Sequence record: NC_041911.1
DNA length: 64,000 nt
Direction: 5' to 3' (one strand)
Part shown: positions 5,750-8,542 of the stretch, piece by piece
Layout of the letters: each line of letters begins with the position of its first letter
Numbering within the stretch: position 1 is the stretch's first letter
Notes under the pieces: model-generated
Databases searched by the model: none
What the model was told of the DNA's origin: nothing
Seen by the model: only the letters and a program-made list of their open reading frames with translations
Made by a program: the position numbers and the translations under genes

Positions 5750-6420
5750 CAAGACGCTCCACCAAACGTCAAGAGAATTCAACCGCAAACCAAACATCAG
5801 CCGAACGAATACCACGCTTCTATAGTGAGTGTGGGGAGAGGATACGGGCCCATCTACCTATCTTACCTCTCCCCACTACCTCGCAGGCCACCATCAAGCC
5901 TTTTGAGTAAAGTGGTAACAACCCACTCACTACCGACACTGTTACCCGCCTCAGGACGTAACCTGTGCATTGGGTCAGCTCCCAACTCAATGTCGGAACT
6001 ACGCTCGTTCTAACGTAGCTTTGCTTTTTACCGCTTACCGAGATAGCGGTGTTTACCTCGCCTCATTTGCTCGGGTCTTTGAGGTTTCGCAATTCCATAT
6101 CCTTTTTTGATAGGCTGGAGGTCTGCAAGAGGTAGAGTTTCATGCCCCGGCTTCAGCTGATGCACTTTTCCCTACTCGCTCCGCACCCACAGGCTATCCC
6201 TCTAAACTAAACACCGACTGTCGCATGGCTGCTACAGCTCCGTATCGCTTGACTTTAATTGTCGACTCTAAACCACTACTACCTATCAGATCTTTGCGAG
6301 GTATGTCGGTCTTACATTCTTGCGATGGGCTTAAGCTACTCTGGTGGAGAAACCTAATCAGCAAGCTGCCGGTGTAGAAACGATCTAGAGCCGCCTGTCA
6401 CTCCGAGTGACGGACAGTGT
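5750..6420 (-). ncRNA. Candidate large structured non-coding RNA (~670 nt)
   Basis: No minus-strand ORF of 60 aa or more in 5.7-6.5 kb; perfect helices 5831-41/5866-76, 5823-31/5924-32, 5914-20/5940-46, 5933-38/5991-96, 6030-35/6045-50, 6397-6401/6407-11; bounded by terminators; strand inferred from context. Confidence 0.6.
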
Positions 6421-6565
6421 CAATTTAAAAGGATAGTCCACGAGCAATCTGAACAAAAACATTCAGAAATGGCTAATGGGACATAACATAGGGAAATATG
6501 ATAAGGTAACTAGGTATTTACCTACTTATGCAAACAAAAAAATAAAGCGGCCGAAGCCGCTTCAC

Positions 6566-6691
6566 TCACCAAGGCCAGTGAGCAAGTCCAGCGAGGATCA
6601 GTAAGACCACCAACAACTTGATCTTAGTCTTCTGGACCTGTACGTAGAAGTCTTTGTCCTCTACGAGGCGATCGAACACGGAACGACTCAT
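6566..6691 (-). CDS. Small membrane protein (41 aa)
   Basis: MSRSVFDRLVEDKDFYVQVQKTKIKLLVVLLILAGLAHWPW; ATGA overlap with upstream gene; below ORF-track cutoff. Confidence 0.65.
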   Translation of the reverse strand: MSRSVFDRLVEDKDFYVQVQKTKIKLLVVLLILAGLAHWPW

Positions 6692-6879
6692 CGACGTAGC
6701 TCCTGTGCTGCTACACGTGCTTCCAGATTCGAATCCTGCAACTCTTCAACCTGCTTGAGCAGGGCAGCCATCCGGAAACCAGCATCGCGACACTCAGCGC
6801 AGTCACTGGACTGCAGATGTTCAACGAGTTGTTCGTCAGTGAACTCTCCATCGAGTTCTTTCTGATGACAGATAGTCAT
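6688..6879 (-). CDS. Hypothetical protein with CxxC
   Basis: MTICHQK...CAEC; ATGA coupling at 6876-6879. Confidence 0.65.
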   Translation of the reverse strand: MTICHQKELDGEFTDEQLVEHLQSSDCAECRDAGFRMAALLKQVEELQDSNLEARVAAQELRR

Positions 6880-7106
6880 TGCCCCTCCGGCCAGACAACA
6901 GCGTCCGCACGGCCAGTGAACACAGCCCACGCGGCACGGAAGCGAGCCTTGATGCCGCAAGCGCATTGCGGTCGAGCAGGAACCCAGCGCCCGTTGATCT
7001 GGGCTTGAGTGGTATTGATAGTCTCGCAGAGACTACGCAGTCCCCACATGGTAGGTTCGTGTTTGAATTCCGGCTTCAGTTTCTTGAACCATTGCAGCAA
7101 CTTCAT
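6876..7106 (-). CDS. Hypothetical protein
   Basis: 76 aa, ATGA-coupled on both sides. Confidence 0.7.
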   Translation of the reverse strand: MKLLQWFKKLKPEFKHEPTMWGLRSLCETINTTQAQINGRWVPARPQCACGIKARFRAAWAVFTGRADAVVWPEGQ

Positions 7107-7555
7107 TGTTTCTCTCCTGCGTTTGCCAGTATGGCGGCTGACTTGTTAAATACTTCTTTGATAACATCCGCGAGCGCCTTCAGGCCGTCGGGAGTATCGA
7201 CGTGGTAGCTGCCGCAGGCGAAGCCTTTGAACCACTCGCGCGGGCTCGGGCAACCACAGTGACCTGCAACGCGCACAACGCGACCGTGGGTAGCGTGCAA
7301 AGCTTCTGCGGTATCGACGTCGAGTCCGGGACCTTCAACCATCCAGTAATACCAGCCGCGAGTGAATTTCCAGCCATGCAGTACGCCCAGTACCGATGTC
7401 TTCACTTCACCGGATTGGCGGCGAAGCATATCAGCCAGCCATTCGGGTGGTTGACCAGCATCTTCTTGCAGCGTCGGAATACCGGCTGCTTTGAGTTCGG
7501 CACGTAGAATATCATCGGTGTCTGCGTGATCACCGGCTCTGTTGGGGAAACCCAT
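7103..7555 (-). CDS. Hypothetical protein
   Basis: 150 aa, GGGAG SD. Confidence 0.75.
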   Translation of the reverse strand: MGFPNRAGDHADTDDILRAELKAAGIPTLQEDAGQPPEWLADMLRRQSGEVKTSVLGVLHGWKFTRGWYYWMVEGPGLDVDTAEALHATHGRVVRVAGHCGCPSPREWFKGFACGSYHVDTPDGLKALADVIKEVFNKSAAILANAGEKQ

Positions 7556-7589
7556 TTCTACTCCCTAAAGTAAGTTAACGGCATAAAAG

Positions 7590-7850
7590 GAATGCAGGGG
7601 GTGGCGAAACCAAGGCTAACCCGTCCCTGATCCCGCCACCCTTCTCCCACACCGCCCTCACCGCGTGCTCGCGGCCAGAGGACTACATTGGGAAGGCTGC
7701 GTCGACAGACGCTCCGGCGGCTAGCGGGCCGCACCATGGCGTCAGCTGTCTTCCCTGCGTGGGGAGCTTTGCGGCCCGCGATCTCGCGAGGCGCGCTCCC
7801 CATCGTTCAGCGCGGGCGAGTCTCTCAATCCCGCCCGCGCCTGAACACTT
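7590..7850 (-). ncRNA. Candidate GC-rich structured RNA downstream of the tRNA cluster
   Basis: Helices 7805-10/7841-46, 7811-18/7832-39, 7761-67/7795-7801, 7690-95/7750-55, 7600-06/7634-40; ends in TTTTATGCCG. Confidence 0.55.
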
Positions 7851-7864
7851 CACTACAACAATAC

Positions 7865-7972
7865 TGATCCCTCGGGTTAGGATTCGAACCTACGACCTGC
7901 GTCTGGTATGGTAGGCCGGCCGCTGAGGACCCGCCTTGGTGACGCCGCTCTGCCGGACTGAGCTACCGAGAG
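7865..7972 (-). tRNA. tRNA-like RNA (class I body) with a 37-nt anticodon loop
   Basis: Acceptor CTCTCGG/CCGAGGG, D arm GCTC/GAGC, T loop TTCGAAT, anticodon stem GCGTC/GACGC enclosing 37 nt; ends A-TCA. Confidence 0.7.
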
Positions 7973-7987
7973 TATGCTACGGAAAAC

Positions 7988-8063
7988 TGGCTCCAAGGGC
8001 TGGGTTCGAACCAGCGACCAACGGCTTAACAGGCCGCTGCTCTACCGACTGAGCTACCTCGGA
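7988..8063 (-). tRNA. tRNA-Asn (GTT)
   Basis: 76-nt cloverleaf, loop CT-GTT-AA, G73, encoded CCA. Confidence 0.97.
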
Positions 8064-8076
8064 ATACTACTAAACT

Positions 8077-8187
8077 TGGTGCAAAAGGTACGATTCGAAC
8101 GTACGAAGTCTTTTCCCATCCTTAGATGAGTCACCTTGTGATGATACGGTTGTATCTCACTGCCTTAAACCACTCAGCCACTTTCGC
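8077..8187 (-). tRNA. tRNA-like RNA (class II Leu/Ser-type body) lacking a canonical anticodon loop
   Basis: Acceptor GCGAAAG/CTTTTGC, A73, encoded CCA, D arm TGGCTGAGTGGTTTAAGGC, T arm GTACG-TTCGAAT-CGTAC; 111 nt. Confidence 0.75.
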
Positions 8188-8199
8188 TTGGAAACTACA

Positions 8200-8470
8200 C
8201 TCCTAGAGCCAGAAGCAAGGCAGCTAACGGCGTCTCCATGACGGTTCTGCTGCCGCTGCCGAGCTAGTGGCCTAAGGGCTATAGTCTCGCTGCTAACAAA
8301 TCCATAACTTGAGAGTTGCGCTGATGAACGCTTCTCCCCTACACTTTAACGAGGATCATCACTCCTCGCAACTAGAGGCCTTTCGGCGGTAATCCTAACG
8401 CTGCCATCCCGGTCAGGGGATGGCCAGCAAACTCGAAGAAAACTAGAGCAGCTACTCCAGAGAGTCCTCA
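8200..8470 (-). ncRNA. Candidate structured RNA or leader upstream of the tRNA cluster
   Basis: No credible ORF; hairpins 8403-10/8417-24, 8350-55/8363-68, GCC-GAAA-GGC at 8378-87, 8219-24/8249-54. Confidence 0.4.
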
Positions 8471-8542
8471 AGTGATAGGATACAGATACAGTGTGAGTCT
8501 CTGCATGAAATAAAGACAACGTGTATTTTTTTACTCTACTTC

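Follow-up and report, generated by a model that had tools for sequence, protein, structure and literature searches.

Conserved structured non-coding RNAs flank a rapidly changing tRNA cluster in a Ralstonia jumbo phage

Introduction

Structured bacterial or phage RNAs longer than about 500 nt are rare and comprise rRNAs, group II introns, GOLLD, ROOL, OLE and a few others. GOLLD (~800 nt) and ROOL (Rumen-Originating, Ornate, Large; mean 581 nt, with multistem junctions) are large, elaborately folded RNAs that are encoded in phages and prophages, often near tRNA islands, and tRNAs sometimes sit inside the GOLLD linker, between its two halves (bioRxiv 10.1101/2024.12.08.627333; PMC5737381). The known phage examples have resisted functional explanation for more than fifteen years. 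The tRNA cluster of phage T4 encodes two small stable RNAs of unknown function, species 1 and 2, which are co-transcribed with the phage tRNAs and released by tRNA-processing enzymes. Long-read transcript mapping of Pseudomonas phage 201phi2-1, a phiKZ-like jumbo phage, revealed a 5'UTR-derived small RNA immediately upstream of a tRNA gene (PMC11512511). Non-decoding tRNA shapes are found in mascRNA, which lies at the 3' end of MALAT1, is recognised by RNase P and RNase Z and defines the end of the adjacent long non-coding RNA (PMC8457004), and in the bacterial Y RNA YrlA (Rfam RF02553), which contains a tRNA-like module without an anticodon.

Here we analysed a window of 64,000 nucleotides (NC_041911.1) from Ralstonia phage RP12, a phiKZ-related jumbo phage. 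A sequence-only reading had described, between positions 5750 and 8520, an island of three structured RNA candidates, two tRNA-like RNAs with remodelled anticodon arms, one normal tRNA-Asn and four small coupled ORFs. We confirm this observation.

Results

Organization of the RNA locus

To define the locus we combined ARAGORN, Rfam, RNA folding and comparison with related phages. The minus strand of 8531-5694, slightly more than had been delimited before, holds two non-coding units separated by four overlapping small ORFs. The three RNA candidates resolve into a leader (a), a trailer (c) and one large RNA (B); the last, a single ~780-nt structured RNA and the main item of the locus, had been underestimated. 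The features, in order of reading, are as follows.

8531-8521, minus strand: AT-rich promoter-like motif (AAAAAATACAC) just upstream of (a); promoter function is inferred
8515-8195, minus strand: leader RNA (a), ~320 nt, structured, upstream of the tRNA compartment
8187-8077, minus strand: tRNA-like TL1, with a 7-bp acceptor stem, D arm, canonical T arm and encoded CCA; a 9-bp stem with a tetraloop, plus a long extra arm, replaces the anticodon arm
8063-7988, minus strand: canonical tRNA-Asn (GUU)
7972-7868, minus strand: tRNA-like TL2, with an acceptor stem, D arm and T loop; an internal loop and a GC-rich hairpin replace the anticodon loop
7864-7588, minus strand: trailer RNA (c), ~275 nt, GC-rich, with a conserved 5' hairpin (7846-7805), a hypervariable middle and a conserved compound 3' hairpin (7653-7591)
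7587-7579, minus strand: TTTATGCCG boundary motif closing unit 1
7555-6566, minus strand: four translationally coupled small ORFs, ORF131 (7555-7103), ORF130 (7106-6876), ORF129 (6879-6688) and ORF128 (6691-6566), overlapping by 4 nt at each junction
6567-6540, minus strand: intrinsic terminator of the small-ORF operon, a 12-bp stem followed by a T run, which separates it from B
6485-5705, minus strand: RNA B, ~780 nt, with a 5' domain (about 6443-6189), a 3' domain (about 6137-5746) and a terminator hairpin (5732-5707)
5702-5694, minus strand: TTTATGCCG boundary motif closing unit 2

The tRNA-Asn was called by ARAGORN, scored 70.9 bits in Rfam and is annotated in AP017924.1, as are the four ORFs. 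The two unannotated gaps (917 and 987 nt) are the largest in the first 49 kb of the window, where every other gap is at most 321 nt. The motif upstream of (a) is present in RP12, in phages FLC1-1B and FLC4-3B and in the uncultivated contig IMGVR312, and with small changes in three further uncultivated contigs (L018, L019 and L026), while only one exact copy occurs in the 64-kb window. The TTTATGCCG motif has 12 exact copies in the window, each of which directly follows a GC hairpin in an intergenic position; it is a genome-wide boundary motif and not part of the RNAs. A conserved terminator motif is reported for phiKZ and 201phi2-1 (PMC11512511). The terminator at 6567-6540 is conserved in the relatives.

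Conservation of (a), (c) and B

We found (a), (c) and B in seven lineages: RP12/RP31, FLC1-1B/FLC4-3B and five uncultivated contigs or contig pairs (IMGVR312, MTEW01001443, L018, L019/L020 and L026). All three are present wherever the contig reaches, and (a), (c), the small-ORF operon and B keep the same order in every lineage whose contig covers them; nhmmer detected (a) in L018, L019, L020 and L026. B is the only part of the query region found by megablast in the FLC phages, while the neighbouring protein ORF125 is only 42% identical, and B is 72-78% identical to RP12 across the lineages.

Synteny across Chimalliviridae had been named beforehand as a check, and synteny does not extend across phiKZ-like phages: Erwinia RAY, Salmonella SA002, Pseudomonas 201phi2-1 and PA7 lack the island and any long non-coding gap at the matching genes, and neither nhmmer nor the covariance model gave a hit there. 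A search for related loci with ORF125 returned only RP12 itself; one scan of genome contigs was empty, and another gave a 19-mer hit in Actinomadura that nhmmer showed to be a chance match. Of the six ORF130 homologues whose contigs were retrieved, three come from unrelated small phages without the RNAs and a fourth from a jumbo-phage-sized contig that also lacks them, and an ORF129 homologue led to an unrelated 59-kb phage contig.

ORF130-, ORF129- and ORF128-like genes lie between (c) and B in most lineages, but L026 has an ORF130-like gene plus a 139-aa gene and MTEW01001443 lacks an ORF128-like gene. Searches of Pfam, NCBIfam and PHROGs with the four small ORFs and five neighbours found nothing informative: the four ORFs matched no Pfam or NCBIfam family and only PHROGs of unknown function, and ORF126 gave a weak, sub-threshold 2OG-Fe(II) oxygenase hit. 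An AlphaFold2 model of ORF130 from 17 homologues (pLDDT 61, pTM 0.30) was too poor for a fold search.

Structure and covariation

To test whether the RNAs are under structural selection we counted compensatory base-pair changes and compared them with column shuffles and slid-partner controls. In B, 42 of 176 pairs are compensated, against 12.3 in shuffles (maximum 20) and 5-10 with slid partners, 94% of cells are paired and the alifold z-score is -11.7; 27 helices are predicted. In (a), from seven sequences, 21 of 44 predicted pairs are compensated, against 5.8 in shuffles and 3 with slid partners (z = -11.3). In (c), from eight sequences, 18 of 49 pairs are compensated, against 6.9 in shuffles and 4-6 with slid partners (z = -5.2); its middle is hypervariable and its GC content is 62-66%, against about 50% nearby. 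Slid-partner controls collapse to 35-50% paired. A covariance-model alignment of a 112-nt subdomain of B was 97% paired and exceeded 500 of 500 shuffles on every measure, so that no shuffle reached the observed covariation. These are our own shuffle tests, which are not phylogeny-aware, and the seven lineages all belong to one phage clade. Many invariant G-U pairs fix the strand, and the minus-strand MFE is -282 kcal/mol, against -224 for the plus strand.

We next asked whether B might encode small proteins. No ORF is shared between lineages and there are many 1-2-nt indels, which rejects this reading. Rfam was run at gathering and at permissive thresholds on the window, on each gap alone and on the relatives, and found only tRNAs, a spurious partial YrlA hit and chance microRNA-like hits. 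In particular, (a), (c) and B gave no hit to the GOLLD or ROOL models at E <= 10; for B this held with relaxed filters on the 811-nt stretch alone, and also in the relatives.

The tRNA compartment and the tRNA-like RNAs

The number of tRNAs between (a) and (c) varies from 0 to 5, and those seen in relatives are Gln, Asp, Asn, Tyr and His; hence the RNAs, not the tRNAs, are the constant part. In RP12, FLC, IMGVR312 and L019, (a) is followed directly, and (c) preceded directly, by a tRNA or tRNA-like. However, L018 has neither between (a) and (c), and L026 has a 149-aa gene between tRNA-Asn and (c).

TL1 passes the Rfam tRNA (RF00005) gathering threshold (35.8 bits against 29) but has 25 extra bases in the anticodon arm; it folds into a 9-bp stem with a 4-nt loop in place of the 5-bp stem and 7-nt anticodon loop of a tRNA, and ARAGORN does not call it. 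A probable orthologue lies at L026 621-698, with both-sided changes at acceptor pairs 1 and 2 and in the T stem. TL2 is called by neither ARAGORN nor Rfam in RP12, with no Rfam tRNA hit at E <= 10 in RP12 or FLC, yet it has a 7-bp acceptor stem, a D arm nearly identical to that of tRNA-Asn and a canonical T loop. About 37 nt replace its anticodon loop, and no triplet is conserved there between RP12, FLC1-1B and FLC4-3B. Orthologues of TL2 are found in FLC1-1B (about 9853-9745 of its locus), FLC4-3B and L019 (480-557, Rfam tRNA 35.1 bits). The last acceptor pair changes from G-C to A-U between the two FLC phages, and the replacement arm remains a hairpin although its sequence differs between RP12 and FLC. 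The acceptor stem of TL2 is imperfect elsewhere, with two mismatches in the FLC phages and only 4 of 7 pairs in L019; in RP12 its T stem has one mismatch and no CCA follows. The folds of both tRNA-likes keep U8, A14, GG in the D loop and the T-loop sequence, and none of the copies has a normal anticodon loop. We also considered tRNA introns and rejected them, as the inserts are 25-37 nt with no conserved anticodon and no bacterial splicing system for inserts of this size has, to our knowledge, been described.

Discussion

The locus is best explained as a non-coding RNA locus read on the minus strand as two units, a reading to which we assign a probability of about 0.6. Unit 1 (about 8520 to 7588) looks like a tRNA operon whose constant parts are (a) and (c), and its two tRNA-shaped RNAs keep the parts that tRNA-processing enzymes recognise (acceptor stem, D/T elbow and, in TL1, CCA) but have hairpins where the anticodon loop should be, so that they cannot decode. 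In this view the precursor would be cut by the host's tRNA-maturation enzymes (RNase P at 5' ends, then 3' trimming and CCA addition), which would release leader, trailer and tRNA-like RNAs as separate stable species, as happens in the T4 tRNA cluster. Such processing at tRNA-like handles cannot be universal, given the arrangements in L018 and L026, and the retention of TL2 in FLC next to a true tRNA-Tyr suggests a role of its own rather than mere punctuation. Unit 2 (6485 to 5705) is a stand-alone RNA of about 27 helices in two domains, with one terminator upstream and its own downstream, and is a new RNA family of the same general kind as GOLLD and ROOL; by analogy only, it most likely acts as a structural RNA particle rather than as a regulator of a neighbouring gene. 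Our analysis establishes the existence of these elements, their strand, their boundaries by terminators, their conserved structure, their co-conservation and their lack of coding potential, whereas transcription, processing at the tRNA-like units and any cellular function are inferred without expression data.

The interpretation offered by the sequence-only reading is supported only in part. Co-conservation holds, and the proposal that two tRNA bodies were kept for a non-decoding role gains some support, but nothing here bears on a multi-RNA anti-defence or translation-control system, which we consider unlikely. Such a system might include tRNA-shaped decoys for host tRNA-targeting nucleases plus helper RNAs: Tyr, His, Asn and Asp tRNAs are the substrates of colicin E5-type anticodon nucleases, and phage tRNAs are thought to replace tRNAs cut by host defences. 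However, TL1 and TL2 lack the loop that anticodon nucleases recognise and so cannot be decoys for that class of enzyme, no defence-related or RNA-repair family was found among the flanking ORFs, and the idea has no functional data behind it. A possible, less favoured alternative is that the three structured RNAs are real but the tRNA-likes are merely decaying genes without a function of their own. The gain and loss of tRNAs between close lineages, the absence of TL2 from IMGVR312 and of anything tRNA-like from L018, the acceptor and T stem mismatches and the further degenerate tRNA-like stretches between the tRNAs of L026 are consistent with this. On the other hand, TL2 is kept at the same place in three lineages that are only about 50-66% identical in the flanking RNAs, it is the only tRNA-shaped element left in L019, where every true tRNA has been lost, both-sided changes keep pairing in the acceptor and T stems, and the elbow nucleotides are intact.

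It is very unlikely that the gaps are cis-acting or DNA-level elements, such as long UTRs, riboswitch-like leaders, promoter or terminator arrays, or an origin or packaging site. Boundary motifs and hairpins do occur at the ends, and (a) begins directly after ORF132 with no terminator between them. But B has terminators on both sides and a different downstream gene in different lineages (ORF127-like in RP12 and, by length only, in L026; ORF125-like in FLC and IMGVR312; ORF126-like in MTEW01001443), the G-U pairs and strand-asymmetric folding point to selection at the RNA level, helices covary over 780 nt and there are no repeats typical of origins. Equally improbable is that B is a very diverged GOLLD or ROOL, a reading that shared context and size range would favour but the Rfam searches do not. 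A more far-reaching but doubtful possibility is that B is a third class of large ornate phage RNA beside these two, the first in nucleus-forming-type jumbo phages, and forms a multi-RNA particle with (a), (c) and the tRNA-shaped RNAs. The invariant loop GGUGGAG (5763-5757) has two invariant complementary sites in B (6349-6343 and 6137-6131), which could mediate intra- or intermolecular contacts, and the tRNA-shaped RNAs could be cargo or docking partners.

These findings change how the tRNA island of these phages is read, because the tRNAs come and go while the flanking RNAs and two anticodon-less tRNA bodies persist; all of these elements are missing from the current annotations of RP12, RP31, FLC1-1B and FLC4-3B. 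The phages have been isolated on Ralstonia hosts and sequenced, so that transcript mapping and structural work on the RNAs are feasible.

Comparison with described RNAs

The only YrlA hit (29.8 bits against a threshold of 69) spans the T arm of tRNA-Asn and the D arm of TL2 and is an artefact of two adjacent tRNA bodies; moreover, Y RNAs have their ends in the Ro-binding stem, not in an acceptor stem. A TROVE gene, for the Ro60 partner, was seen only in an unrelated contig, the scan of the phage being limited to nine ORFs flanking the island. The 201phi2-1 RNA shares its position upstream of a tRNA in a phiKZ-like phage, but nhmmer and the covariance model detected no relation in the one locus examined, the 24.6 kb around the dCTP deaminase gene. 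Like mascRNA, the tRNA-likes may mark the ends of adjacent non-coding RNAs without decoding, but that system is eukaryotic and the role here is inferred from position and from retained elbow and acceptor features only, and is not universal among the lineages. T4 species 1 and 2, the precedent cited in the sequence-only reading, share the context of a tRNA operon; (a) and (c) are two to three times longer, and the phage is unrelated. B resembles ROOL as a large phage-encoded RNA near tRNAs, although it is longer, does not match the Rfam model and is known so far from only seven lineages. It differs from GOLLD in host range (a Ralstonia jumbo phage clade), in lacking a match to the family model and in being a unit separate from the tRNAs, and formation of an RNA-only homo-oligomeric cage, a criterion for GOLLD and ROOL, is not known for B. 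The likeness of B to both families rests on context and size only: with GOLLD it shares a phage genome, nearby tRNA genes, a length of about 800 nt and many helices, and the (a)-tRNA-(c) arrangement recalls the tRNAs that sometimes lie between the two GOLLD halves. A new, unrelated family with this genomic habit gives an independent case for asking what the proximity of GOLLD and ROOL to phage tRNAs means.

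Genomic setting of the locus

The stretch 5600-8600 is 100% identical to Ralstonia phage RP12 (AP017924.1, 279,845 bp) and to RP31, and window coordinates equal record coordinates minus 124,000. RP12 is described as a phiKZ-related jumbo phage (PMC5468394). All genes in this part lie on the minus strand. The published annotation shows only tRNA-Asn and hypothetical proteins here and leaves two gaps, 5649-6565 (917 nt) and 7556-8542 (987 nt, holding the tRNA), which are the largest in the first 49 kb of the window, where every other gap is at most 321 nt. Neither the RP12 paper nor the FLC paper, on the related phages FLC1-1B and FLC4-3B, mentions non-coding RNAs.

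To examine the contents of these gaps we first searched for tRNAs. ARAGORN finds a single tRNA, Asn(GUU), and Rfam adds a second tRNA-model hit that scores 35.8 bits against a threshold of 29 and carries 25 extra bases in the anticodon arm. This tRNA-like RNA, TL1, folds into a 7-bp acceptor stem, a D arm, a canonical T arm and an encoded CCA, while a 9-bp stem with a tetraloop and a long extra arm stand in place of the anticodon arm. A second tRNA-like RNA, TL2, is missed by both programs; it has a 7-bp acceptor stem, a D arm almost identical to that of tRNA-Asn and a canonical T loop, but about 37 nt (an internal loop plus a GC hairpin) replace the anticodon loop, and in RP12 it does not encode CCA. 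Four small ORFs overlap by 4 nt at each junction. The sequence-only reading had listed three structured non-coding RNA candidates, two tRNA-like RNAs with remodelled anticodon arms, one normal tRNA-Asn and four small coupled ORFs, and this list is correct. The three candidates resolve into a leader (a), a trailer (c) and one large RNA, B. The features of the locus, all on the minus strand, are as follows.

8531-8521 (-), AT-rich motif preceding (a), promoter function inferred
8515-8195 (-), leader RNA (a)
8187-8080 (-), Rfam tRNA-model hit, TL1
8063-7988 (-), tRNA-Asn(GUU)
7972-7868 (-), TL2
7864-7588 (-), trailer RNA (c)
7587-7579 (-), copy of a nonamer boundary motif following (c)
7106-6876 (-), ORF130, one of the four small ORFs
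6567-6540 (-), intrinsic terminator ending the small-ORF operon
6485-5705 (-), large RNA B
5732-5707 (-), intrinsic terminator ending B
5702-5694 (-), copy of the nonamer boundary motif following B

Conservation of the locus among relatives

Searches with DNA patterns and with neighbouring proteins gave seven lineages.

Lineages carrying the locus and their sources
RP12 / RP31: GenBank phage records
FLC1-1B / FLC4-3B: GenBank phage records
IMGVR_UViG_3300049460_000312 (283 kb; IMGVR312): IMG/VR
MTEW01001443.1 (MTEW): metagenome contig
L018: JGI contig
L019 / L020: Logan contigs
L026 / L027: Logan contigs

Profile searches with nhmmer find (a), (c) and B in all of these lineages as far as the contigs reach, and the order is always (a), tRNA compartment, (c), small ORFs, B. 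Identity to RP12 is 72-78% for B, 49-68% for (a) and 47-67% for (c). B was the only part of the 3-kb query that megablast detected in the FLC phages; the neighbouring protein ORF125 (4502-3867) is only 42% identical. ORF125 also has homologues in Erwinia Agricanvirus phages, where the matching gene sits among several similar-sized hypothetical genes just downstream of chimallin and an nvRNAP subunit (retrieved locus L008, 8013-12185).

Conserved structure of RNAs B, (a) and (c)

To determine whether the RNAs are under structural selection we compared their alignments with shuffled and displaced controls. With seven sequences, RNAalifold predicts 176 pairs for B, of which 42 have both-sided changes, and 94% of cells are paired. 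Column-shuffled alignments give 12.3 compensated pairs (maximum 20) and an energy of -90.9 ± 7.1 kcal/mol against -173.6 observed (z = -11.7), while sliding the 3' partners by 1-3 columns gives 5-10 compensated pairs and about 40% pairing. A covariance model of a 112-nt subdomain (6020-5908) recovered all copies; pair counting on this alignment gave 97% pairing, and 0 of 500 shuffles reached the observed value on any measure. Many invariant G-U pairs fix the strand, and the minus strand folds 58 kcal/mol better than the plus strand.

B has about 27 predicted helices in a 5' domain (about 6443-6189) and a 3' domain (about 6137-5746), followed by a terminator hairpin, and its peripheral hairpins vary in length between lineages. 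No ORF is shared between lineages, and 1-2-nt indels are common. Within B, the invariant hairpin-loop string GGUGGAG (5763-5757) is complementary to two other invariant strings, CUCCACC and CUCUACC (6349-6343 and 6137-6131). These are candidates for a pseudoknot or a kissing contact on complementarity alone, since they never vary and covariation therefore cannot test them.

In (a), 21 of 44 pairs are compensated, against 5.8 in shuffles (z = -11.3). In (c), 18 of 49 pairs are compensated, against 6.9 in shuffles (z = -5.2); its two ends are well conserved and its GC-rich middle is hypervariable.

Boundaries of the two units

One intrinsic terminator ends the small-ORF operon and another ends B. 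The nonamer TTTATGCCG follows both B and (c) and is not part of the RNAs. It occurs 12 times exactly in the 64-kb window, at 150-158(+), 3207-3199(-), 5702-5694(-), 7587-7579(-), 9501-9493(-), 18089-18081(-), 24004-24012(+), 30369-30361(-), 39733-39725(-), 40674-40682(+), 45171-45163(-) and 49940-49932(-), and each copy sits directly after a GC-rich hairpin in an intergenic position. We read it as probably the phage's own terminator or transcription-boundary motif; a conserved terminator motif is reported for phiKZ and 201phi2-1 (PMC11512511). Some copies are on the opposite strand, which suggests bidirectional sites. The AT-rich motif precedes (a) in the RP12, FLC and IMGVR312 lineages, and with small changes in L018, L019 and L026.

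The tRNA compartment

The compartment between (a) and (c) changes rapidly between lineages.

Content between leader (a) and trailer (c)
FLC phages: Gln, Asp, Asn, Tyr and TL2
IMGVR312: Asp and Asn
L026: Gln, a 78-nt tRNA-like, His, Asn, then a protein gene
L019: a single weak tRNA-like (35.1 bits)
L018: nothing tRNA-like; a partial duplicate of the (c) 3' hairpin
RP12: TL1, Asn and TL2

The structured RNAs are therefore the constant part and the tRNAs are passengers. The true tRNAs found at this site in relatives (retrieved loci L002, from FLC1-1B, 9869-10233; L005, 2361-2529; and L026, 537-1156) are Gln(UUG), Asp(GUC), Asn(GUU), Tyr(GUA) and His(GUG), most of which belong to the GUN-anticodon family, and RP12 keeps only Asn. 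The partial duplicate in L018 (1023-1125) occupies the place of the tRNAs. In L026 the protein gene (1227-1676) encodes 149 aa and lies between tRNA-Asn and (c), and two further degenerate tRNA-like stretches lie between its tRNAs. The short spacers after each tRNA or tRNA-like (8077-8063, 7988-7972 and 7868-7853 in the window, and the matching spacers in L002, L005 and L026) share a similar GT-rich string ending in GTAG, which may be a processing signal. Elsewhere in the FLC phages, the annotated tRNA-Arg(ACG) (L002 3313-3384) scores only 27.2 bits with the Rfam tRNA model, just under the threshold of 29.

Both tRNA-likes have probable counterparts in other lineages. The L019 element has the same D and T arms as TL2, sits at the same place and has a 7-bp stem where the anticodon stem should be, while the two FLC copies of TL2 differ by a G-C to A-U change at the last acceptor pair. 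An L026 element (621-698) shares its acceptor, D-arm and replacement-stem strings with TL1 and differs by both-sided changes at acceptor pairs 1 and 2 and in the T stem. These points argue for selection on the acceptor and elbow parts, although TL2 has two acceptor mismatches in FLC and only 4 of 7 pairs in L019, which speaks against this.

Small ORFs and neighbouring genes

The small ORFs have no known family. ORF130 belongs to a widespread family of small phage proteins with ten invariant positions, mostly in the C-terminal half, and this family also occurs without the RNAs, in small phages next to DNA methylase genes. A homologue of ORF129, another of the small ORFs, led to an unrelated 59-kb phage contig (ENA ERZ27264385; L010, 1-1314) that encodes a TROVE (Ro60-like) protein, the usual partner of Y RNAs. 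ORF126 (4965-4615) has a weak, sub-threshold match to the 2OG-Fe(II) oxygenase superfamily (21.3 bits against 27), and a homologue follows B in the MTEW contig.

Interpretation and comparison with known families

The observation made from sequence alone is confirmed and extended, and the most notable element is a new ~780-nt structured RNA family. The interpretation attached to it, that the island acts in anti-defence or translation control, remains an untested hypothesis. What our analysis demonstrates is two terminator-bounded non-coding units, their conserved structure and their co-conservation. That the unit-1 precursor is cut by the host tRNA-maturation enzymes at each tRNA-shaped body is our inference. 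In this view, cleavage would release (a), (c) and the tRNA-likes as stable RNAs, the tRNA-likes retaining what those enzymes need and lacking what decoding needs. In four lineages (a) and (c) directly abut a tRNA or tRNA-like, but L018 and L026 show that this cannot be the whole story.

The island is absent at the matching genes of Erwinia RAY, Salmonella SA002 and Pseudomonas 201phi2-1 and PA7. Rfam 15 has no match for (a), (c) or B at E <= 10, and a partial YrlA hit is an artefact because it bridges two adjacent tRNA bodies. By analogy only, B would be a structural RNA of the kind represented by GOLLD and ROOL, RNAs of unknown function that are both phage-encoded and found near tRNA islands.
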